From: Heteronotia binoei
Lineage: Eukaryota
NCBI RefSeq assembly: GCF_032191835.1
Contig: NC_083231.1
Coordinates: 2,170,001 to 2,234,000 of the forward strand
Reading direction: 5' to 3'
DNA length: 64,000 bases
In this document: positions 16,781 through 55,856 of the stretch, one piece after another
How positions within the stretch are numbered: position 1 is the first letter of the stretch
How the letters are laid out: each line of letters opens with the position of its first letter
The notes under the pieces: generated by a model
Told to the model about the DNA's origin: nothing
Database searches by the model: none
The model's input: only the letters and a program-made list of their open reading frames with translations
Translations under genes and position numbers: made by a program

Positions 16781-19700
16781 TGTCAAGCATGGTGAAATTC
16801 CATTGATAATTGATTGTTTTAGGGTCCTGCCTAACCTGGTCTGTGAAGTATCATGGAGGATCCAACTTTGCTAGCTTGTTATTCTTTCCCTTCCCTCCAT
16901 CTTGCTTTATGGCTTATAATTAGAAGTAGTGAGAACTGAAACCAAGTAATCAGCACCTTCCCATACATTCCTGTAAGGGAGTACGAGACATCTGGGGAAA
17001 GCAAGGATGCAGTCCTGATAACACTATGGGAATGTAGACATTTATGCTAGTTTATGTGTGAATGCTACCCCGCAACCCCATCCCTTGGAATCCTTTTGAA
17101 GTAAGCCTTAAAAGTATTGTATCAATGTATTGTCAGCATTACTCTCAAGAACCTGTTATACCAAAGTATCTGTCTATCAATAAATGTAGTCTTTGTGCCG
17201 GAGTACGCTCTCTTAAACCTAGTAGACGCCCCATATATTCCTGAACATGCGGAGGAATTAATCTCGCATATTTCGTGGCAGCTAAATTTGCAATAGCTTT
17301 GGTCTGGAAGCAAAATCTCCTCCCTCGAGGCAGGCCTGGTGGCTGAAACTGTGGGATTATTTTGTCTTAGATAAGCTTACTTATGATTTAGATCCCCATT
17401 GTTCTTCCCAAACTGCTTCCTTGAGTTTTATGCGAAAATGGCGTCCCTTCCCAAACTGCTTCCTTGAGTTTTATGCGAAAATGGCGTCCCTTCATTAGTA
17501 AAGTCTCAAAGGACAGCGGAAGCCCTAATGACTCATATCATGCTATACTGATGTCATGCCAACTAATGTTGTAACTTGTTTTTCATTGGTCAATCTTGTA
17601 TGTATCCACTTCCTCATTTTATATTGGTACTTGGTACGCACCTATTGATGTACTACCATCTCTGTACCTGAAACTTTATATTAATAAAGCTTTTCAAAAC
17701 TTAAAAAAAAATGTAGTCTTTGTATCAACTTCGACTCGTCATTGAACCCGCATGCTTGACATTTTGAGACTAAACTACAAGAAGTTTAACCGCCCTGGCA
17801 ACTTTATAGCTGAATGGCTGAAAAGATTCCAGTAAGCAGTGAACTTCCCGAACCTGAGGAAGGGGCGAGAGCACCAACCCCAATGTGGCACGTGCTGGAC
17901 GCCCGGAGAGTCGCTGGACCGAGTTCCCCTCTCCACATTCAACAACTATTGGTCACCCCGCAGCAGTGGCAGCCCCGTACCTCCACCACCACGAAGGATG
18001 AGGCTCCAGCACGCCGAGAAGCCATTCTAACCAGGCACATGCGCCGGGTAAAGATGGCCAACGAAGGGGGTGAGAACCCTGGACCCGGAGAGGAAGAGGG
18101 CACAGAGGCTTGTAAGAAAGTGGCCTTGTAAGTAGTGATCGGTGCAGAAGCCGACCCCCCTCTGGGCACGGGACTTGGGAACCCCGAAACACCTGGCCCG
18201 AGAGAGGAGGAAGATGAGATGGCTCGTGAATTCCGTGCGATGATCCAAAAGGAGGTTGAAGAGGTCACCAAGGGATTGCGGGACGAGATGCAGGAGATAA
18301 CCACCATGATGGCTGGAGAGTTCAACAGGCAAATTGACCGAGTCCTGGGAACGACCCACCCGAGAAGAGCCCCGCAACCGCCTGTGGTTAGACCCCCAGC
18401 AGCGCTGCTGCCACTGCAACCGGCGGCGCCCCCAGCCCCACTAGAGGGGGGCCGCGGGAGAGAGTTGGAAGCCACCTTTGACGGAGATCCCGAGGAGGTG
18501 GAGTATTTCACGATCCAGGCGAATAGCTACATGCACTATTGGGGGGAACACCTTGCCTGATGAATTCAGTCATGTGGACTATCTGGGATCAAAATTGAAG
18601 GGGGCCGCCAAAAGGTGGTACGTGAGCCTGTACAAGGCCATGAGCCCGGAGCTGGACTTTGTGGCCACTTTCTTACAAGCTTTGCTAGCCCAGTACGAGG
18701 GCCCTCTGCAAGAGACCCGTGCCCTGGCCGCCCTGAGGGACATGCAACAAGACTCCAAGACGATTCGGGAGTATGCAGCCGAGTTCCGTACCAACGCGGC
18801 CAAGGTGAGGGGGTGGAGTGAACTGATGAAGATTGAACACTTCACCCGCAGGCTGAACGCGAGCTTCCTGGATCGAGCCCTGCAACAAGCCAGACCAACC
18901 AACCTGGTGGGATGGATCCAACTGGCGGGAGAAGTGGAGACCAATATGAAGAGAGTGGCCATGCAACGGCAACATCAGAGCAGTAAGTCAAGTCGTGACC
19001 CGAAACCCAAAGGGAAGACGGAGGCGAAGAAACCCCAAGGGGGGGGGAGCCAGGGGAAAACCACCGGGCACCCGCAAATGCTTCAGGTGCAGGGACCCAA
19101 ACCATCTGGCCAGCAGCTGTCCGAACCCTCCCAGGCCACCATCGAGCATCTCTAAGACAAGCACTCCGGCACCAAAGAAGCAGGCCGGCCGCCCTAAGGA
19201 AGCGGAGAAGAGCAGTGCAGCCATGAGTTCGATGCCTGATGACGACACCATCGTCACCAATGAGATGAGTGAGATGTCCTGGGCTGACGAGCCACTGAGA
19301 AACGAGGACGACCTGCTCTAAATGGTGCCAGCCAGCAGGTCGCCGATGAACCGGCACCACTCAGGATGAGAGTAACGGGGTCGCTATATTTTGTGCCAGT
19401 AATTTTGCTAAACAGCAAACTCAAGAGGTTCGTGCAAGTGAAAGCCCTGATTGATTCGGGCTGTACCAGAGACATAATCACCCCTAAACTGGTGGACGCA
19501 TTGGGGCTTCCCACGATGGCCTTGCCGCACCCCATCCAGTTTGAACAGATGGATGGGTCAGTAATGAGGGGGGAGCCATGTGTGTTAGAGACTCAGTTAG
19601 TGCCGTTGGGCATCAAAGACCACTGGGACCAGGCGGCCTTTGTAATTGCCCCCTCCTCCTCTTACAATGTGGTTTTGGGAGTGGGTTGGTTGACCAAGCA

Positions 19701-22700
19701 TGAGCCAGACATTCGGTGGGGCGACCAGACAATAGAATTCAATGACCCGAGATGTAAAGCCCATCACTGGACTAAGGAATGGGGTCCCAGTCCACCGCCC
19801 CGAAATGAGAAAGTCTGCTTGACAACGGAAGAGGTTCAGGCAATCCCTAATGCCTATAAAGACTTGAGGGGGGTGTTCAGCGAACAGGGGGCCGATGAAC
19901 TACCACCCCATAGGGACATGGACTGTGCCATTGAACTGATCCTGGGGCAAACCCTACCTAAGGCCAAACTGTATTCGATGGGGTGGGCGGAAAAGGTGGA
20001 ATTGCGGAAATTCCTAGATAAGAACTTGAAATGAGATTTCATCCAACCCGCCACAGCCCCCCATGCAGCCCCAGTCCTCTTTAGAAAAAAGGACGGCTCG
20101 CTCGGACTTTGTACTGATTTTCGGGGGATTAATGGGATCTCCACCTCCAATGCCTATCCTATCCCCCCTCATCAAGGACTTACTCAGCACGGTGTCGGAG
20201 GGAAAGGTGTTCACAAAGCTGGACTTGAGGGATGCGTATTTTAGAGTGCGCATCAAAGAGGGGGATGAATGGAAAACGGCGTTCAATACACCCATGGGAC
20301 AGTTTGAGTATCTAGTAATGCCATTTGGGTTGCAAGGGGTTCCGGGAGTGTTCATGAACTTTATCAATGAGGTGTTGAGAGAATATCTGTTCAAGGGGGT
20401 GGTGGTGTACCTGGATGACATCATTATCTATTCACAAGATCTCCCATCGCATGTGAAATTAGTGAGGGAGGTTCTTAGCACCCTATTGAAGCACAAACTG
20501 CATGCTAAATTGTCAAAATGTGAGTTCCATAAGACCGAATTTGACTATTTGGGCTTCAGGGTATCAGCACAGGGGTTAGCCATGGACCCGAGTAAGGTTC
20601 AAGCGGTACCGGATTAGGCTCCCCCGAGGACACGTAGACAGCTCCATTTGTTCCTCGGGTTCGCCAATTTTTACCGAACCTTTATACCAGGGTTTGCCAA
20701 ATCATGTTACCCCTCACGGAGTTGCTAAAAACCAGAGGTAAGGGTCCGGACGCAAAAAAACCGGGGGGCAAAACTAAATTGGACACAGAAGCGCCAAGAG
20801 GCGTTCAATAAGCTCAAACAATTGTTCACTAGTGAACCAGTTTTAAGCCACCCTAATGAGCTGAAGCCCTTCATTGTGCAGCGTGATGCCTCCAATGTCG
20901 CCGTCAGAGCCATCCTCATGCAAAAAGATGAGGAGGGGAGGCTAAAGCCCTGTGCCTATATTTCTAAAAAGTTTTCCCAGGAGCAGAGAAATTGGTCGGT
21001 ATGGGATAAAGAAGCTTTTGCTGTGACTTACGCTCTAAAGACCTGGAGGTCATGGCTAGAAGGCGCTAAAGTGCCATTTGAAATCTGGACCAATCACAAG
21101 AATTTGGAAGCGCTCACCGGTCGGCGTAAACTCAGTGAAAAGCAGATCAGGTGGGCGGGTTTTTTTTCCAAATTCGACTTCGTGCTGAGGCACATCCCTG
21201 GGACAAAAAACTTTTTGGCGGACGCCCTTTCGCGCCTTCCTCAGCACAATAGCCAAAAAGAGGAGGTGGTAGACTCTCTGATCCCTCTCTCTCAACTAGC
21301 CGCCATGGTAACCACCCGGTCCAAAACACGGTGGAATCTGCAGCCCGATAAGTGGGGGAGAGAGCGCCTGGCCATAGAAACTGAAAAGGAGGGGGAAGAC
21401 AGACCGGAGGAAGTACAGAAAGGGGAGGATGGGTTTTGGTATAAAGTTGACAAGCTGTATGTCCCTAAGAGCCTACGGTCCGAAGTCTTGCAATTCTACC
21501 ACTCTAACAAATTAGCTGGCCACTTTGGGTATGTGAAGACACTGCATTTAATTAACAGACAGTTTTGGTGGCCTTCCATGAAAAAGGACGTTTCTGAATT
21601 CGTTGCCTCCTGTCCAATTTGCTTAATGGCAAAAAAGGGGGAGGGGAAGCCCCCCGGGCTGTTAAAACCTCTGGAGACACATGTCCTTGGTCTGTGGTGT
21701 CAATGGATTTCATAGTCGAACTACCAGTCTCACAAGGCAAAACCATAATTCTGGTAGTAGTGGACACCTTCTCCAAACAAGCACATTTCATCCCCTGTGC
21801 GCAGCTGCCAACAGCTAAGAGATTAGCCTATCTATTTTTCCATCACATTGTAAAACTACACTTGTTCCCGGATAAGATTATTAGTGACAGAGGGCCACAG
21901 TTCGTTGCCAACTTCTGGCGGGAGTTCTGTAAGTTATCAGGCATAGAACAAGGGTTGAGCTCAGCCTACCACCCCCAGACAGACAGACAGACAGACAGAA
22001 CGCGTGAACGCACTGTTAGAACAATATTTATGGTGCTATGTGAGTCACCAACAGTCTAACTGGGTGGATCTCTTGCCGTTTGCTGAGTATGGTTACAATA
22101 ACAGCGTGCACAGCTCAACCAAGGCTTCCCCGTTTCAGATTGTAAATGGGTATGAGGGGAAGCCTGTTCCGTTGCTGCCAGGGGGAGAGCAAACCCGTGA
22201 CCCCACCTCGTTCGAACAACGGTGGGGAAAATTAGGGAACAGCTGGAAGGGAATTCAAGAGAATTTGGAGGCCGCTAAGGAGGCGTACAAAAAACAGTAT
22301 GACAAATCCCATGTACCCACTTGGGATTTTAAAGTGGGGGATTCAGTATTTGTGTCAACAAAAAACCTCCCACTGAATCAGCCCTCCAAGAAGCTGGCGT
22401 ATAGATTCTTGGGTCCTTTTTAAGATCAAGAGGGTGATTAACAAAGTGACCGTAGAATTGGCCCAAAATGTTTAGTAAAATACACCCTGTCTTTCATTGC
22501 AGTCTTTTGCGAAGAGACCCGGGTGGTTCTCCTTGGCACCCTCGACCACCAGCTCCGCAACCTATCCAGATTGGAAATCAGAGTCATCATGAAGTACAAG
22601 AAATATTAAATTAAAAAATGAAGCGTGGAGTTTTGTATTATTTGATTAAGTGGAAACATTTCCCAGCCAGTGAAAATGAATGGGTAGCAGAAAAAATGAG

Positions 22701-28283: not shown

Positions 28284-31200
28284 TGTCAAGTCTGCTGTAT
28301 TTTGGTTGACCTATTCTCTAACTCTGGTTCAGAAGCAAGGGATTCTGGGTAGATCACACTGAACACTGAATGCTGCTAGCTAACTCTCCTTCCCCCCTTT
28401 CATAGCTATGCCTTTGTTATGTAGCCTGCTTTGAAATGCTGATATGTGAACAAGATAGTAGAGCCTTCTCAGGCCGGGTGTCTGTGGGAGTGTTAAGCGC
28501 CAAGGCCTTGGCTTGGGAACGAGGGAGTAACATCCTAGTGCGAAAATATACTGCATAGAGTGCCCCGCCCGTAGGAATCCTTTGATCTATACCTTAAATG
28601 CTTGGTGAATGTCCATGTACCCCAATCCTTCAATCTCTATCATGGTCTTCAGTTCTGCTTTCAATAAACTAGTAACTTTGTTTCAACCAAAGACTCGTTA
28701 TTGAATTCAGCCGACTTGACATTTTGAAGGACTCCCTATCTTGGAGTTCAACCTTTCCGGCAACTTGAAAAGGCGATGACCGACCAGACTCCGGACAACG
28801 GAGAACTCCCAACCAGAGCGGAGGGGGCTGAGACACCCTGGCACATCCATACTGCCAGAAGGACCGCGGCTTCTCCCCCCCAGTTTCAACTGGTGGTTAC
28901 TCCCCGGCAATACCAACCGAGGACCTCCACCACGCTGATGGACCAGGCACCGATCCGCCGGGAGGCAATCATGACCCGCCACACCAAGCGGGTTCAACTG
29001 GCTGAAGCCGCGGCTACCAACCCGGGCGAGTCGGGCGAAGGAATCGAGGCAACCGTGACCCAAGTCCCCGGTAGCGGAGGCGAAAGTGCGGAGTGTGGGG
29101 CGGAGGATGGGGGGCCGAAGCCCAAGGACCCGCACGATGAGGACTATGAGATGTTTCGGTCGATGGTCCACCGCGAGGTCGGCGGAGCGGTGAAGGACCT
29201 CAAGGACCAGATGCAGACCCTAACCACGCAGCTGGGGAGAGCGTTGGGGGTGACCGGGGCCCGTCAGCAACAGCCAGGGCCGGCGGGGCCTCGGGGCCGC
29301 CCAAGCCAACTGCCACCCGTCGCCCCCACGGCTCCCCAAGCGCCGGCGGCACCCCCACCTGCCCCGGTTAGGCAGCGAGACTTGGGGGGGGGGGCCGGGA
29401 GCTGGATGCCACTTTCGACGGGGACCCGGAGGAAGTGAACTACTTCACGATCCAAGCGAACAGCTATATGTACTATTGGGGGGACCTGTTCCCCGACGAG
29501 ATGAGCCGAGTGGATTACCTGGGGTCGAAGCTGCGGGGCGCTGCCAAGAAATGGTACGTGAGCCTGTGTGAGACCAACAGCCCGATCCTGCACTTCGTAA
29601 ACACGTTCGTGCAAGCCCTACTGACCCAGTACGAGGACCCCTTGCAGGAGGCCCGAGCGCTATCGGGACTACGGAACATGAAGCAAGGGGACCGATCCAT
29701 CCGGGAATACGCGGCAGATTTCCAGGCTAACGCTGCCAGGGCCTGGAACTGGAACAAAGTAATGAAAATCGAGCACTTCACCAACGGGCTGAACCCTAGC
29801 ATCCTGGACCGGGCGCTCACCCAAGCCAACCCAGACACGCTAGTGGGATGGATCCAGCTGGCGGGAGAGGTGGAAACCAACCTGAAGCGAGTGGCAATGC
29901 TGTGCCAAGCACTGGCTGAGGGCAAAGGAGCGCCCAAAACCACTCCCCGGAAGGCCGAGCCTCCCAAAGCCAAGAAGCCGCCGGTGGCCGCTCCGGCGGG
30001 GCCCCGCCGTTGCTTCCGGTGCGGTGACCCAAACCACCTCGCCTCCAACTGCCCTCAGCCTCCCGCGGGAACCACCCAGGCGCCAGGGTCAACCAGGCAG
30101 AGCACCCCGGAACCCAAGAAGCCCCCTGGCCGCTCTAAGGATGCGGCGAAAAGCAGCGCGTTGATGGTGCAGGAGGAGCTGCAGGAAGAAGAGGTCCGTC
30201 TATCCGCAGAATTGGCCGACCTCGCGTGGGAAGAGGAGCCGGCGGGAAACGACTCCGACCTGCTCTGAACAGTGCCAGCCAGCAGGTCGATCGGGAAAAG
30301 GCACCACTGACGGTGAGAGCCACGGGAAGACTGTACTTTGTGATGGTAAAATTGTTGAACCCAAAGTTGAGAAGGTTCCTACAAATTCGAGCCCTCGTAG
30401 ACTCGGGGTGCAACCGAGAACTAATCTCCCCCAAGGTGGTGGAGGCCCTGGGGCTAGAGCGCTCACAGCTGCCCCACCCCATGCTGTTTGAGCAGATGGA
30501 TGAGTCAGTGATGGGGGGGGAGCCCTGTACGCAGGAAACAGAGCCATGCCCCTTGGGGATTGAGGCCCATTGGGACCAGGTGACTTTTGTCATTGCCCCG
30601 GCCTGCGGCTATCCAGTAGTGTTGGGAGTGGGGTGGCTGGAAAGGCACAAGCCGCTCATTCGTTGGAAGGCACAGACCATTAGGTTCCCCGACCCAGATT
30701 GCAGCGGGCACTTATAGAACACGGCGTGGGGGCCGCAGGTGCCCGCCGCCCGAGAGAGGGCGTGCGTCCTGGTAGAGGAGGTGCACCATGTCCCGAGTGC
30801 ATACCGCGACCTGATGGAGGTGTTTAGCGAGCGGGAAGCCAATCAACTACCCCCCACATCGGAACACGGACTGTGCCATAGAACTGATCCCCGGGGAAAG
30901 CCTACCCCGGGCCAAACTCTACCAGATGGGGTGGGCCGAGAAAAAGGAACTGCGCAAATTCTTAGACTTGAACCTGGACAGGGGTTTCATTAGACCCGCA
31001 ACGGCCCCCCATGTGGCCCCGGTTTTGTTTAGAAAGAAGAAGGATGGGACGCTTAGACTTTGCACTGATTTTCGCGGGATAAACGCGATTTCGATGTCCA
31101 ACGCCTACCCCATCCCCCTCATCAAAGACTTACTGAACACGGTGTCGGGGGGGAAGATATTTACAAAACTCGACCTGAGAGACGCGTACTTCCGAGTGCG

Positions 31201-34061
31201 CATCAAAGAGGGGGATGAGTGGGAAACGGCGTTCAACACTCCAATGGGGCAATTTGAGTATTTAGTTATGCCGTTTGGGTTGCAGGGGGCGCCGGGGGTG
31301 TTCATGAACTTCATAAATGATGTGTTGAGAAAATTTCTGTACAAGGGGGTGGTGGTGTACCTGGATGACATCATTATTTACTCCCAGGATGAGCAATCTC
31401 ATGTAAAATTGGTGAGGGAGGTACTGAGCACCCTGCTAGAGCATCAACTGTATGCGAAACTGTCTAAATGCGAATTTCACCGCACCGAACTAGACTACCT
31501 CGGGTTCCGAGTGTCTAGAGAAGAATTAGCCATGGACCCCGCAAAAGTGCAGGCGGTCTTAGAATGGGCCCCCCCAAGAACACGTAGACAGCTCCAATCA
31601 TTTCTCGGGTTCGCAAATTTTTACAGAGGATTCATTGAGGGGTTCGCCCAGATCGCCCTGCCCCTAACTGACCTCCTAAAGACAAAGGGGAAGGGCGAGG
31701 ACGCGAAGCGACCCGGGGCCAAGCTAAACTGGACGCCCACCTGCCAGGCGGCTTTCGACCGGCTCAAGCAACTGTTCACTAGCGAGCCGGTCCTGAGCCA
31801 CCCGGATGAGCAAAAGGGCTTCATGGTGCAATGCGACGCTTCCGACGTCGCCGTAGGAGCCATTCTCATGCAGAGGGATGGGGCGGGGAAACTGCGACCC
31901 TGTGCCTACATCTCGCGGAAGTTCTCCGACGAGCAGAGGAATTGGTCGGTGTGGGACAAGGAGGCTTTCGCAGTCATGTTTGCATTAAAAACCTGGAGGT
32001 CGTGGCTAGAGGGAGCCAAAGTGCCATTTGAAGTGTGGACTGATCACAAAAACCTCGAAGCGCTAACTGGGAGACGGAAACTGAGTGAAAAGCAAATCAG
32101 GTGGGCGGGATTCTTTTCCAAATTTGATTTCACCCTAAAACACATCCCAGGGACCTGGAATTTCTTGGCCGACGCCCTGTCAAGGCTCCCGCAACACGAG
32201 AGCCAGAGGGAGGAGATGGTAGACTCGCTAATATCCCCCACGCAAGTGGCGGCCATGGTCACCACCCGCTCACAGAAAAAGAAGGAACTGGACGGGCTCA
32301 GCCGCGACCGCATCGCCTTGGAGACCGAGAGGGAGGGAGGTGGGCAGCCCGAGGGGGTGCGGAAGGGGAAAGATGGGCTGTGGTACAAAGAGGAGAAATT
32401 ATACGTCCCGATGACACTGAGAAGAGAGATCTTGCAACTATGCCATTCATCTAAATTGGCCGGGCACTTTGGCTATGTAAAAACCCTGCACTTAGTGAAC
32501 CGACAGTTCTGGTGGCCGTCCTTGCGAAAGGACGTGTCGGAATTTGTAACCGGCTGCCCGGTGTGCATAATGGCGAAAAAGAGGGGGGGGGGAGCCCCCA
32601 GGTCTACTGCAACCACTGGAAACGGCCAAACGCCCCTGGGCCATTGTGTCCATGAACTTTATAGTAGAGCTTCCTTCCTCAAGGGGGAAAACAGTCATTT
32701 TGGTGGTGGTAGATACGTTTTCCAAACAAGCCCATTTCATCCCCTGTACCCAACTACCCACAGCCAAGAAACTGGCCACCCTATTCTTTGATCACGTGGC
32801 CAAACACCACTCAATCCCCGACAAAGTCATTACTGACCATGGGCCTCAGTTCGTTGCCACCTTTTGGTGGGAGTTCTGCAAACTGTTAGGGATGGAGAAA
32901 GGGCTAAGCTCAGCGTACCACCCCCAGACGGACGGACAGCCAGAGGGAGTGAACAGGGTGCTGGAGCAATATTTGTGGTGCTTTGTGAGCCAGCGCCAGT
33001 CCGACTGGGTAGATCTCCTCCCCTTTGCAGAATATGCCTATAACAACAGTACCCACAGCTCCACCAAAGCCTCCCCCTTTTCAACAGTGTTTGGGTATGA
33101 GGGAAAACCGATCCCGATGCTGCCGGGGGGGGGGGGGAGACCCAGGCACGGGCTCTGCCTTCAAACAATGGTGGCAGGGACCCAGCCAGTGCTGGCCATC
33201 CATCCAGGAGAACTTAAAAGTAGCAAAGGAGGCTTACAAGAAGCAATATGACAAGTCTCATGTACCAGTCTGGGAGCTAAAGGTTGGAGACTCAGTATAC
33301 CTGTCAACGAAAAATCTGCCCCTCTCCCAACCATCCAGGAAATTGGCTTTTAAATTCTTGGGTCCCTTTAAGATCAAGCGAGTAATCAACCCAGCAACTG
33401 TGGAATTAGATTTGCCTCCTGCCCTTGGTAAAATCCACCCTGTGTTTCATTGCAGCCTGCTCCGTCGAAATCCGGAACCGTCCCGTTGGCATCCGCCAGA
33501 ATCAACATCCCTCCCCGTCAAAGGGGAGTGTCGGAGCCTCTGGGGCCCCGAAACACTGAGCTATAATCGGGAGCAAACCTTCCCTCGAGCCCGCGCTGCA
33601 GGAGGGGCTTAGGGGGGGCAGTATGTCAAGTCTGCTGTATTTTGGTTGACCTATTCTCTAACTCTGGTTCAGAAGCAAGGGATTCTGGGTAGATCACACT
33701 GAACACCGAATGCTGCTAGCTAACTCTCCTTCCCCCCTTTCATAGCTATGCCTTTGTTATGTAGCCTGCTTTGAAATGCTGATATGTGAACAAGATAGTA
33801 GAGCCTTCTCAGGCCGGGTGTCTGTGGGAGTGTTAAGCGCCAAGGCCTTGGCTTGGGAACGAGGGGGTAACATCCTAGTGCGAAAATATACTGCATAGAG
33901 TGCCCCGCCCGTAGGAATCCTTTGATCTATACCTTAAATGCTTGGTGAATGTCCATGTACCCCAGTCCTTCAATCTCTATCATGGTCTTCAGTTCTGCTT
34001 TCAATAAACTAGTAACTTTGTTTCAACCAAAGACTCGTTATTGAATTCAGCCGACTTGACA
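28284..34061 (+). mobile_element. Ty3/gypsy Tf1/sushi-type LTR retrotransposon, element B, young, no chromodomain
   Basis: 438-bp LTRs at 28284-28721 and 33624-34061, with only 3 differences seen, and TSD CACTG. Gag 28776-30268 (CFRCGDPNHLASNC). Pol in the -1 frame from ~30244 to 33612 (ALVDSGC, YLDD, RNase H, HHCC/DDE integrase). PPT present. Confidence 0.97.
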
Positions 34062-51310: not shown

Positions 51311-54300
51311 TGTAGTGTATCATCAGCGATACGCGCCCTGCGCAGAGGCGACTGGGCTGTCCCAGGCGCTCCAGCGTAGGGCGCGGAATCCCCCGCCAAT
51401 CACCAGCTGTGGCGGGAAGTTCAACAGGTCAGGATTGGCCTGGCCTGCCCAGTAGGCTGTACCGGGGATTGTATATAAGCGGGACCCGGCCCGCGTGTTC
51501 CCTCTCTTGCAACGTGCTCTGAATAAAGAATGTTGCCCTACCCGCGTCTCCGGACTGAGTACGTTACACTGGCGACGAGGATGGGATTCTAGCCTCATCG
51601 GCTACGCCGGAGATCAAGGGCACCACCAGGCCACGACCACCGCCGCAGCTGCCATGGCCACCCAGGGCGGAACCACCGGTCACGTTGAGCCGTTCGACCC
51701 CGCGAATCCAGAGGCCTGGGAGTCCCACTTGGAATGGGTTGAATGCTACCTGAGGGCCAACAAGGTCACGGAGGACAGTATGAAGAGGGACGTTCTCCTG
51801 AGCGTCTGCGGTGCAGCCACATTCGAGATCGCTAAAGGTCTCTCGGCCCCCGCCCGCCTCACGGAGAAGTCCTTCGCGGAAGTCAGCAGCTCCTCACCGG
51901 CCATTTTTTGCCTCAGCTTTCACGGGTGGCTCGCCGGTTCCTGTTCCACAGAAGGGACCAGGCTGCAGGAGAATCGGCCGCCGACTACTTGGCGGCGCTA
52001 CGCAGGATCGCCAGGAACTGCAACTTCCCCCAGCTGGAAGAGACCCTGGCCGATCGCTTCACGTGGGGCCTCCACGACGAGAGGCTCCAGCAGAAGCTCT
52101 TCGCCAAGGAAGAGCTCACCCTCCAGAGCGCCTTCAGCGAAGCTGTGGCGTTCGAAAGGACTTCGAGGACCTTTCCCAAGGCCCGCACAGACGCCGTCCA
52201 CCACGAGGAGCTGGACCACGACCGCCCGGAAGAGGGAGAAGCCTACCAGCTGCGCCGCCCAGCTGGGCCACCCAACTGAGCATCCCCGGGCCCCGAGCGC
52301 CGGAACGTCCCCCAGCGTCGGAGAGGTCTCCAGCCCCCAAGTGCGCCAGCTGCGACGACCCACACGACAGACGGGACTGCCAGTACCGGACCTGGGACTG
52401 CCGGAGCTGCGGGAAGACCGGCCACATCGCGAGGGCCTGCCGGACCAGGCCCAGCTGTCGGAGGCCGACCACCCACCAAGAGTCCGCGGAGTTCCACTCC
52501 ACAGCATCCACGAACATGCAGGTACTGAACTTGCCCCTGAGCGTCCCAAATAAAATGAAAATGGCGGTCCTAATAGAGGGCGCCCCCTGCCAAATGGAGG
52601 TGGACTCGGGCTCCTCCATTTCCATTATATCAGAGGAGACCCTGAGGAATCTGTGCCCCGGGCAGCGGGTTCAGACAAGACCGGCGGACTTTGTTCTAAG
52701 AGACTTTCAGAAGAACCCGGTGCAGATCGCGGGGTGGGCCCGGGTGCATGTCGAGCGGGGGTCCTTTAGGGGGCCGTTGGACATTCTGGTGGTCAAGCGC
52801 CAGCTGACCACCCTACTGGGTCTGGCGTGGTTCAAACCCCTGGGAATATGACTGGAGGGGGTGGGGCAAATCCTATCCACCAGTGGGTTCGGGGAGGTAT
52901 GCCGCGAGTTCCCCGACATGTTCGATGGGTCCTTGGGGAGCTACAAAGGGCCGGCCATCTCCCTACCGCTGGACCCGACGGTCCGACCAATCAGGCTAAA
53001 GGCCAGAAGGGTTCCTTTCGCCCTCAAGCCCAAGATAGAGGCGGAATTGGACCGGCTAACGGCCCAAGGGGTACTGGAGCCAGTAGACTACGCCACGTGG
53101 GAGACCCCCATAGTCACACCGGTCAAGCCTAATGGGGAGGTGCGGATCTGTGCTGACTATAAGTGCACCATAAACAGGGCACTTCAAGACAATCCGTACC
53201 CAGTGCCGGTGGTGAGCCATGTTCTGGCAGCCCTAGCAGGGTCAAAGATCTTCGGGAAGCTGGACCTGGCGCAGGCCTACCAGCAGCTCCCGGTAGATGA
53301 AAAAACGGCAGAGGCCCAAACGATCGTCACACACAGGGGGGCTTTCAGGGTGCGGAGGCTACAGTTCGGGGTGAGCGTGGCTCCAGGGATTTTCCAAAGC
53401 ATAGTAGACGCTCTCCTTAAAGGAATCCCCAGAGTCCAACCGTTTTTCGACGACGTTTTGATCGCCGCCCCGGACCCCGAAGAATTCAACAACCGCCTCA
53501 GAGAAGTGCTCCGCCGGTTCCAGTCTGCGGGGCTCAAAGTCAAGCGGGAAAAGTGCTTACTGGGAGTTCTGTGGGTGGAGTTCCTAGGGTTCGCGGTAGA
53601 CGCCGCAGGAATCCACCCGCCGGAAGAGAAAACACGAGCCATCGTACAAGCCCCGGCCCCCACTTGCAAAGCAGAACTCCAAAGTTTCCTGGGGTTGCTC
53701 AATTTTTATCATACGTTCCTCCCACACAAGGCAGCCTTGGCGGAACCGCTACACCGGCTGCTGGACAAACACGCCCCTTGGGTATGGGGCAAATGCCAAG
53801 CCGCCACATTCCAGGCGGTTAAGGACACGCTGGTCTCAAATGCTGTGCTCCACCACTTTGATGAGCGCCTTCCGGTCATACTGGCCTGTGATGCGTCTCC
53901 ATATGGGGTGGGCGCAGTCCTGGGGCACCAACTCCCGGACGGGAGGGAGGTGCCAGTAGCCTATTACTCCCGCACGCTAACGCCGGCAGAGCGCAATTAC
54001 GCTCAAATCGATAAAGAGGCGCTAGCCATAGTAGCGGGGGTACACAAGTTCAATGATTACCTCTATGGGCGGAGGTTCACGATCGCCACCGACCACAAGC
54101 CGCTCTTGGGCCTGCTAGCGCCGGACCGCCAAACCCCACAAATACTGTCCCAGAGGGTACTGAGGTGGAACCAGTTCCTAAATTCATACACGTACACACT
54201 GGTCCACCGAGCAGGCAAAACAATGGGCCACGCGGACGCGCTCAGCCGCTTGCTGCTTCCGGAAGTGGGTCCCGCCCCCGCACACCATGTCATGCTAGTG

Positions 54301-55856
54301 GAGAGCCTCCCAGAGCAGCCCCTCCATGCAGCGGAGGTCGCCAAGGCCACACAGAAACACAAGACACTGGCACGGGTGCTCGACTGGGTGGTGAGGGGCT
54401 GGCCGGAAGGGAACATGGGGGAAGAATTCAAACCGTATAAGACCAGGAGGGAGGAACTAGCAGCCCACAAAGGGTGCCTCTTATGGGGTAGCAGGGTGGT
54501 GGTCCCGCCCCCGCTACAAAAGCGTGTTCTAGAGTCCCTACATGAGACCCACCCCGGCATAGTCCGAATGAAGGCCTTAGCGAGGAGCTACGTCTGGTGG
54601 CCGGGGATGGACGGGGAGATCGAGAATTGGGTCCGTAGGTGCCAGACATGTCAGGAATTGCGGCCCGAACCTCCCAGCGCCCCGCCACTCGGTGGGAGTC
54701 CACCCGGAAGCCATGGTCGAGACTCCACCTCGACTTCGCGGGGCCATTCCAAGGGCAGATCTTCCTCATAAGCGTGGACGCCTACACCAAATGGCTGGAG
54801 GTCTTCCCCGTAGCGTCCACGTCTTCAGCCTCCGCCATCCGGGCACTGCGCAGGGCACTATGCACACACGGCATTCCCGACACCATCGTCTCTGACAACG
54901 GGGCGGCCTTCACCTCTGGAGAATTCCAGGCGTTCCTCCAGAGGTACCTGATCCGACACATAAGGTCCGCCCCGTTCCATCCGGCCACCAACGGTCAGGC
55001 AGAGCGCATGGTGCGCACCACGAAAGAAGCCCTTAGCCGGATCATACAGGGGGATTGGGAACACCGGCTAGCGGCTTTCCTATTTGACAACCGGGTGATT
55101 CCCAACCCTGTCACGGGGGTAAGCCCGGCGGAACTCCTCATGGGGCGCAAGCTCATAACCAGGCTTGACCGGCTACACCCCGACAGGGCTTCAGACATTC
55201 GCGGGAACCCCGAGGTCCGGGACGCGGCCAGGGGTTTCTTCGCAGGCGACCCGGTATACGCCCGGAACTATGCCAGGGGGCCCGAATGGGTGGCGGGTCA
55301 AGTGCTACGAGTCACGGGGTCCCGCCACTACGATATATCAACCGAGGGGGGCCAGGTCGTACGGCGGCACATAGACCAACTACGCCGCCGCACACTACCA
55401 GAAGAACCAGTGGACACAGAAGAAGCGAGACCCGGGGAAACGCCAACCAGGGGCCAACCAGAGGACGCGGCCCCAACTCCCATTATTCCGACGCACGAAG
55501 CGCCCGGGCCGGCAGAGCCCGAAAGACCCGCGGAACAGGACCAGCAGACTCCGGTCGCGCCTCCACCCACAGACACACCAGCAGCAGGAGCCGCGCCTCC
55601 CCCACAGGACCCCCTAAGGCGGTCCACCAGGGAGCGCCGACCTCCCGCTTATCTCAAGGACTATGTACATTAACCAGGGGGGGAGGGGTGTAGTGTATCG
55701 TCAGCGATACGCGCCCTGCGCAGAGGCAACTGGGCTGTCCCAGGCGCTCCAGCGTAGGGCGCGGAATCCCCCGCCAATCACCAGCTGTGGCGGGAAGTTC
55801 AACAGGTCAGGATTGGCCTGGCCTGCCCAGTAGGCTGTACCGGGGATTGTATATAA
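51311..55856 (+). mobile_element. Ty3/gypsy Mag-type (K02A2.6-like) LTR retrotransposon, element C, with truncated 3' LTR
   Basis: 258-bp 5' LTR at 51311-51568 (TGTAG...TTACA, TATATAA, AATAAA). Gag from ATG 51654 has two CCHC knuckles. Protease VDSGS, RT FFDD, RNase H and integrase follow, ending PPAYLKDYVH* at 55673. PPT 55676-55688. The 3' LTR 55689-55856 stops after the TATA box. Three frameshifts and one TGA at 52849. Confidence 0.93.
51570..51589 (+). promoter_or_regulatory. Primer binding site complementary to tRNA-Ser(GCU)
   Basis: TGGCGACGAGGATGGGATTC is the reverse complement of the recalled vertebrate tRNA-Ser(GCT) 3' end GAATCCCATCCTCGTCGCCA. Confidence 0.85.

Follow-up and report, generated by a model that had tools for sequence, protein, structure and literature searches.

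Does the junction of gag and pol in a gecko retrotransposon carry a recoding signal of the kind known from PEG10, and if it does, how are the two related? The question is raised by element B, which extends from 28284 to 34061 of the window, i.e. the whole 64-kb stretch of Heteronotia binoei DNA analysed here. Gag-pol frameshifting in LTR elements is textbook knowledge, and the frameshift of PEG10 is essential for placental development, with drug-targeting efforts under way. The result obtained here is confirmatory: the cassette of element B is an expected and well-supported new example, and it involves no new mechanism.

Among LTR retrotransposons, element B belongs to Ty3/gypsy (Metaviridae), and there to the sushi/Tf1-like group. 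Its pol has Pfam matches to RVP_2, RVT_1, RNase H, Integrase H2C2, rve and SH3_Tf2-1, the Pfam domain order of the whole element is CA-CCHC / PR-RT-RNase H-IN with a Tf2-type SH3, and the closest proteins in the protein search are squamate models named “Gypsy retrotransposon integrase-like” and “PEG10”. The two LTRs differ at 3 positions only (99.3% identity; 435 of 438) and the 5-bp target duplication CACTG stands at both flanks, so the insertion is young. Gag and pol, on the other hand, are interrupted by a single in-frame stop and by four or more frame breaks, whose positions are approximate: one change of frame lies in gag and three more lie in pol, in addition to the stop (Table 1). Across gag and pol, the ORFs examined do not amount to an autonomous coding capacity. 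When the earlier note on this DNA called the element recently mobile, it was right about the insertion, to judge from the LTRs and the duplication, but the gag and pol of this copy are broken. Because of these breaks, the signal described below is not productively usable by this copy, which is non-functional; the intact signal is a fossil of a function at the level of the family. Near-identical LTRs together with broken ORFs could mean either that a defective copy was mobilised using the proteins of other copies, or that some of the breaks are assembly errors. The window also contains a third RT region (53017-54750), which is unrelated and shares 29% identity with the RT of element B.

Table 1. 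Features of element B, of its frameshift cassette and of the same cassette in the older element A (positions in the window)
Feature	Position	Strand	Remarks
Cassette of element A	19297..19357	+	heptamer changed to GAGAAAC; stems and loop lengths as in element B; loop sequences differ; gag tail and protease in frames 0/-1
5' LTR, element B	28284..28721	+	438 bp; TG at start, CA at end; target duplication CACTG just upstream
gag, N-terminal part	28776..29438	+	frame differs from that of the remaining gag; the frame is broken at about 29.4 kb
gag, capsid and CCHC zinc-knuckle part	29435..30268	+	tail ...PAGNDSDLL, then TGA; Pfam Retrotrans_gag, Ty3_capsid, DUF4939, zf-CCHC
-1 frame ORF, start of pol with aspartic protease	30226..30717	+	DSG at 30400-30408; in-frame stop at 30715-30717; Pfam RVP_2, gag-asp_proteas
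Slippery heptamer G GGA AAC	30244..30250	+	in gag frame, GGA and AAC being gag codons; base before is C
Spacer, 5 nt	30251..30255	+	
Stem 1, 5' arm, 9 nt	30256..30264	+	
Loop 1, 7 nt	30265..30271	+	holds gag stop TGA, 30266-30268
Stem 2, 5' arm, 5 nt	30272..30276	+	
Loop 2, 4 nt	30277..30280	+	
Stem 1, 3' arm, 9 nt	30281..30289	+	
Loop 3, 10 nt	30290..30299	+	
Stem 2, 3' arm, 5 nt	30300..30304	+	
RT, RNase H and integrase zinc-finger piece of pol	30926..32791	+	another frame; Pfam
Integrase core piece	32646..33251	+	another frame; Pfam
Integrase C-terminal SH3 piece (Tf2-1 type)	33025..33612	+	another frame; Pfam
3' LTR, element B	33624..34061	+	3 mismatches to 5' LTR; CACTG just downstream

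At the junction itself, gag and pol overlap by 43 nt (30226-30268), and the heptamer lies inside this overlap. Pol lies in frame -1 with respect to gag; the -1 ORF spans the heptamer and encodes the aspartic protease, and gag ends with the tail ...EEPAGNDSDLL*. Past the spacer, stem 1 has 9 perfect pairs and encloses a 16-nt hairpin loop, while stem 2 has 5 perfect pairs (GTGCC/GGCAC). Together the two stems are predicted to form an H-type pseudoknot whose loop 1 holds the gag stop, a prediction of moderate confidence as far as stem 2 is concerned. Canonical eukaryotic -1 PRF signals have an X XXY YYZ heptamer of the upstream frame within the overlap, the expected product encoded in the -1 frame and, 5-9 nt further on, a stable structure that relatives conserve, and the junction has all three. 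Judged by its sequence, we regard it as a genuine PEG10-type -1 frameshift cassette. On recheck, the positions that the earlier note had given for the heptamer, the spacer, both stems and the end of gag turned out to be exact, as did the placing of pol in the -1 frame.

PEG10 (also Edr) is a gene of therian mammals, and its frameshift is experimentally proven. Its published site reads GGGAAACTC, with a 5-nt spacer and a structure that begins two bases past the UCC codon; in the published signal, stem 1 is bulged by 3 nt and loop 1 contains the gag stop. A PEG10 orthologue was also found in our representative search (P0215, tail ...SPSGNSPAPL), and its contig (L012) shows GGGAAAC with a C in front of it and 5 nt of spacer behind it. 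Stem 1 has 10 bp and a 3-nt bulge, its loop opens with the stop TAG, and stem 2 (GGGACC/GGTCCC) has 6 bp and could be lengthened to 8 bp, with a loop 3 of 9-11 nt. We take this orthologue to be non-human, as its sequence differs from that of human PEG10. PEG10 and element B are alike in the C followed by G GGA AAC, in the 5-nt spacer, in having exactly five codons from AAC to the stop, in the stop within loop 1, in the H-type pseudoknot, which is a prediction in element B (with 9-10 bp in stem 1, 5-6 bp in stem 2 and a loop 3 of 9-11 nt), and in a DSG protease encoded in the -1 frame. They differ in the sequences of stems and loops, loops 1 and 2 being shorter in PEG10, and in stem 1, which carries the 3-nt bulge in PEG10 but consists of nine uninterrupted pairs in element B. 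The zinc knuckle is about 10 residues away from the heptamer in PEG10 and about 65 in element B. Besides, PEG10 is a host gene without LTRs, whereas element B is an LTR element. The PEG10-like frameshift layout proposed in the earlier note is thus matched item by item in the literature and in contig L012, and the PEG10 gag tail, quoted there as ...PAGN..L*, reads ...(A/S)GNSPAPL*.

Conservation of the cassette can be seen within the window. Element A (17100-22000) is an older relative of element B, whose RT protein is about 74% identical to that of B. Its gag is interrupted by frame breaks of its own, and in its cassette the heptamer is altered and the pseudoknot unaltered. Over a 1.3-kb stretch, A and B are about 60% identical; all 28 stem bases are kept and the loops differ. 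The identity of 0.90 at 30260-30289 is among the three highest peaks of this stretch, compared with 0.37-0.67 in the flanks.

Eight more junctions of the squamate type, from Paroedura picta, Heteronotia binoei and one public run, were collected by protein searches and contig look-ups, which makes ten together with elements A and B. For gag homologues, a word-indexed protein collection gave only one match, and an exhaustive representative search was used instead. In the ten-sequence alignment, the proposed structure is paired in 82.9% of the cells, compared with 22-47% after shifting the partners by 1-3 columns. Both sides have changed in six of the 14 pairs, and the observed pairing or covariation score was reached by none of 500 shuffles. 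RNAalifold, run on the ten junctions, predicted exactly the nine pairs of stem 1, three of which are compensated. As a predicted structure, stem 1 is strongly supported by these comparisons, in which RNAalifold is an independent line.

Stem 2 has three variants: GTGCC/GGCAC in the elements of the window and in Heteronotia, GCCCC/GGGGC in two Paroedura copies, and GGCAC/GTGCC in the public run; one Heteronotia copy has a U.G pair in this stem. All three variants occupy the equal loop position and pair 6-12 nt past stem 1. When stem 2 is taken alone, shuffles give p = 0.04-0.12 per lineage possessing it, and two junctions out of the ten (Paroedura copy 2 and L009) showed no convincing stem 2. 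MAFFT set the stem-2 arms of Paroedura out of register, which makes the counts for stem 2 conservative; for Paroedura, this stem was given a score of its own. With three distinct complementary arm pairs at one position, stem 2 is moderately supported as part of the predicted fold.

The heptamer varies more among the ten junctions, being GGGAAAC in four, GGGAAAT in one and changed from G to A within its first three bases in the other five. Every intact GGGAAAC (window 30243-30244, L001, L004, L008 and the PEG10 contig L012) is preceded by C, so that its first G belongs to a CpG, and three decayed copies have an A in place of this G, as CpG decay predicts. Part of the heptamer variation is therefore ordinary decay of dead copies.

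To place PEG10 relative to these elements, the earlier note had suggested a phylogeny. Our gag tree of 48 rows (quick search, midpoint root) is divided into a 16-row group, with PEG10, a piranha element and environmental proteins, and a 32-row group with all squamate elements, both with 100% SH-aLRT support, and in this tree the lineage of element B is not the nearest relative of PEG10. We then have eighty metagenome loci (L013-L092) related to the PEG10-side group. These loci have an Asn codon 15-18 nt upstream of the gag stop, with GGAAAAC in 35 and GGGAAAC in 9 of the 80, and the heptamer is followed by a 5-nt spacer, a stem, the stop in its loop and a second stem that starts just past the stop. 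A stem 1 of at least 6 bp and a stem 2 of at least 5 bp in the geometry of the cassette exist in 10 of the 19 non-redundant environmental loci, against 0.42 expected from shuffles. The environmental bearers of the cassette are probably fungal or plant-associated. Since elements on the side of PEG10 bear the cassette as well, element B is one bearer among many and does not represent the “ancestral form” of the PEG10 module that the earlier note saw in it; by its distribution, the cassette is old and widespread. The PEG10-like reading is thus partly supported by the comparison, namely for the layout and for a probable shared ancestry, and not for a special closeness.

Several other explanations have to be weighed against a frameshift signal with a pseudoknot. 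Heptamer and inverted repeat might co-occur by chance, and indeed GGGAAAC is not enriched in the 64-kb window (10 copies vs 12 expected), while the folding-energy z-score of the 60-nt stretch is weak (-1.58) because the region is G+C-rich. Perfect 9-bp stems with loops of 3-30 nt, however, have only 97 start positions in the 64 kb and two in the 4.9-kb interior of element B, one of which begins exactly 5 nt past the in-frame heptamer within the 43-nt overlap. The cassette exceeds the chance expectation. Given the frame, the placement in the overlap, the scarcity of such stems and the recurrence among relatives, a chance origin has next to no probability, and the comparative data have effectively refuted it. 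It is also very improbable that double coding of the gag tail and the pol N-terminus, and not an RNA structure, accounts for the conservation. The 5' arm of stem 1 does lie where gag and pol overlap, and several copies share the tail ...DLL*, but the 3' arm of stem 1 and both arms of stem 2 lie past the gag stop, where pol alone codes; lineages show little conservation of the pol peptide in this part, and paired changes alter amino acids while the pairing persists. The stimulator might further be a simple hairpin (stem 1, perhaps extended) that causes frameshifting without a pseudoknot, stem 2 being a chance complementarity. We consider this unlikely. In its favour, stem 2 is just 5 bp long and is equalled by shuffles of element B in 8% of trials, Paroedura copy 2 and L009 either lack it or show it unclearly, and in the minimum-energy fold of B, stem 1 is preferably lengthened by a 3-bp extension, which shares one base with the stem-2 arm. 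This competing extension is not kept in element A, however, and three lineages have different complementary arms at the equal loop position and at a similar downstream distance, with stem 2 beginning just past the stop also in PEG10 and in the 10 of 19 environmental relatives.

The likeness to PEG10 raises a separate alternative, in which GGGAAAC, spacer and pseudoknot are a generic solution of retroelements, reached convergently and with no common ancestry. The stem sequences differ, stem 1 of PEG10 is bulged, and the gag tree sets PEG10 and the squamate lineage apart with full support for each. The simian retrovirus 1/Mason-Pfizer gag-pro signal, from an unrelated retrovirus lineage, consists of GGGAAAC and an H-type pseudoknot, and PNMA3/5 and RTL3 use GGGAAAC too, so the heptamer alone is no proof of shared ancestry. 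Convergence is nevertheless improbable, because independent details match (the C before the heptamer, the 5-nt spacer, a stop that comes 5-6 codons later and sits in loop 1, a stem 2 past that stop and a loop 3 of 9-11 nt) and because the layout is present on both sides of the gag tree, for which inheritance within the retrotransposon group is the simplest account. The layout of the cassette appears to go back to a common ancestor among the metaviruses.

Returning to the preferred reading, we hold it to be very probable that the cassette is the gag-pol recoding signal of a sushi/Tf1-like Ty3/gypsy element, with the layout of PEG10 and most likely with an H-type knot. In a working member of the family, most ribosomes on the genomic RNA would finish at the gag stop, and the downstream structure would hold up a minority while GGA occupies the P site and AAC the A site. 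There, tRNA-Gly and tRNA-Asn would slip back together by one base, to GGG and AAA, and translation would continue in the -1 frame. The product would be a Gag-Pol predicted to be joined as ...PAGN/RLRPAL..., with protease, RT, RNase H and integrase after the junction. As the stimulator we propose the 9-bp G+C-rich stem located 5 nt past the heptamer, whose 16-nt loop, holding the gag stop, would most likely pair through 5 bases with a segment 10 nt downstream, leading to the H-type pseudoknot. We infer these translation steps from the sequence features, the frames, the covariation and the PEG10 layout. Stop-codon readthrough as a route to pol was rejected; the 0 frame stops again 14 codons later. 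Rfam has no family that matches the junction region (the sole match, at E = 2.5, is by chance), and a PDB sequence search with gag gave no match.

How does this signal compare with other known systems? In a 2003 survey, pol was reportedly in the -1 frame in 28 of 51 animal Ty3/gypsy elements, many of which had tandem-slippage heptamers. Gag-pol sites of Ty3/gypsy elements in general likewise have pol in the -1 frame and a classical heptamer near the gag stop, but the pseudoknot layout with the stop in loop 1 is, within the present data, specific to the PEG10/sushi group. Some relatives do without the signal: in snakes (Crotalus adamanteus, C. tigris and Pantherophis guttatus), gag and protease are in one continuous frame (...DPMVS...), and at the corresponding places (L002:4900-5200, L005:4330-4620, L006:44800-45100 and L011:3620-3860) there is no gag stop and no pseudoknot region. 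As this related lineage has fused frames without the cassette, the signal is dispensable in some relatives. The fused-frame state of the snakes resembles RTL1 and the published proxy Gypsy-15_Ano.

PEG10 is assumed to have its frameshift from a metavirus. According to a 2024 survey of domesticated capsid genes, the ancestor of PEG10 almost certainly had a frameshift, while its proxy Gypsy-15_Ano is without one. Both Gypsy-15_Ano (from Anolis) and RTL1 belong to the same broad sushi-like Metaviridae group as element B and have no frameshift, unlike element B and its gecko relatives. Squamate relatives with the cassette support inheritance of the PEG10 signal over later invention, and its living bearers are natural variants with which the importance of single features of the PEG10 knot could be tested. 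We incline, if only slightly, to a broader reading, in which the combination of C and GGGAAAC or GGAAAAC, 5-nt spacer, stem 1, stop in loop 1 and stem 2 past the stop might be a deep trait of the whole sushi/PEG10-related branch of the Metaviridae, from environmental elements through fish and squamates to PEG10. If this is true, the gecko and lizard elements would be the frameshift-bearing living relatives that are missing from the 2024 survey, and the recoding signal of PEG10 could be dated and traced pair by pair.

As to the variant heptamer, G GAA AAC takes the place of G GGA AAC in 12 of the 19 non-redundant environmental loci and in one Heteronotia copy (L010:12916-12988). GGAAAAC is also said to occur in a paper that treats frameshifting in connection with dsRNA mycoviruses of Fusarium poae. 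It goes without mention in the part of a large 2016 recoding review that was available to us. Several environmental loci with GGAAAAC have a -1 ORF that is open for more than 460 codons, and the non-canonical G GAA AAC looks like a shift site that is used.
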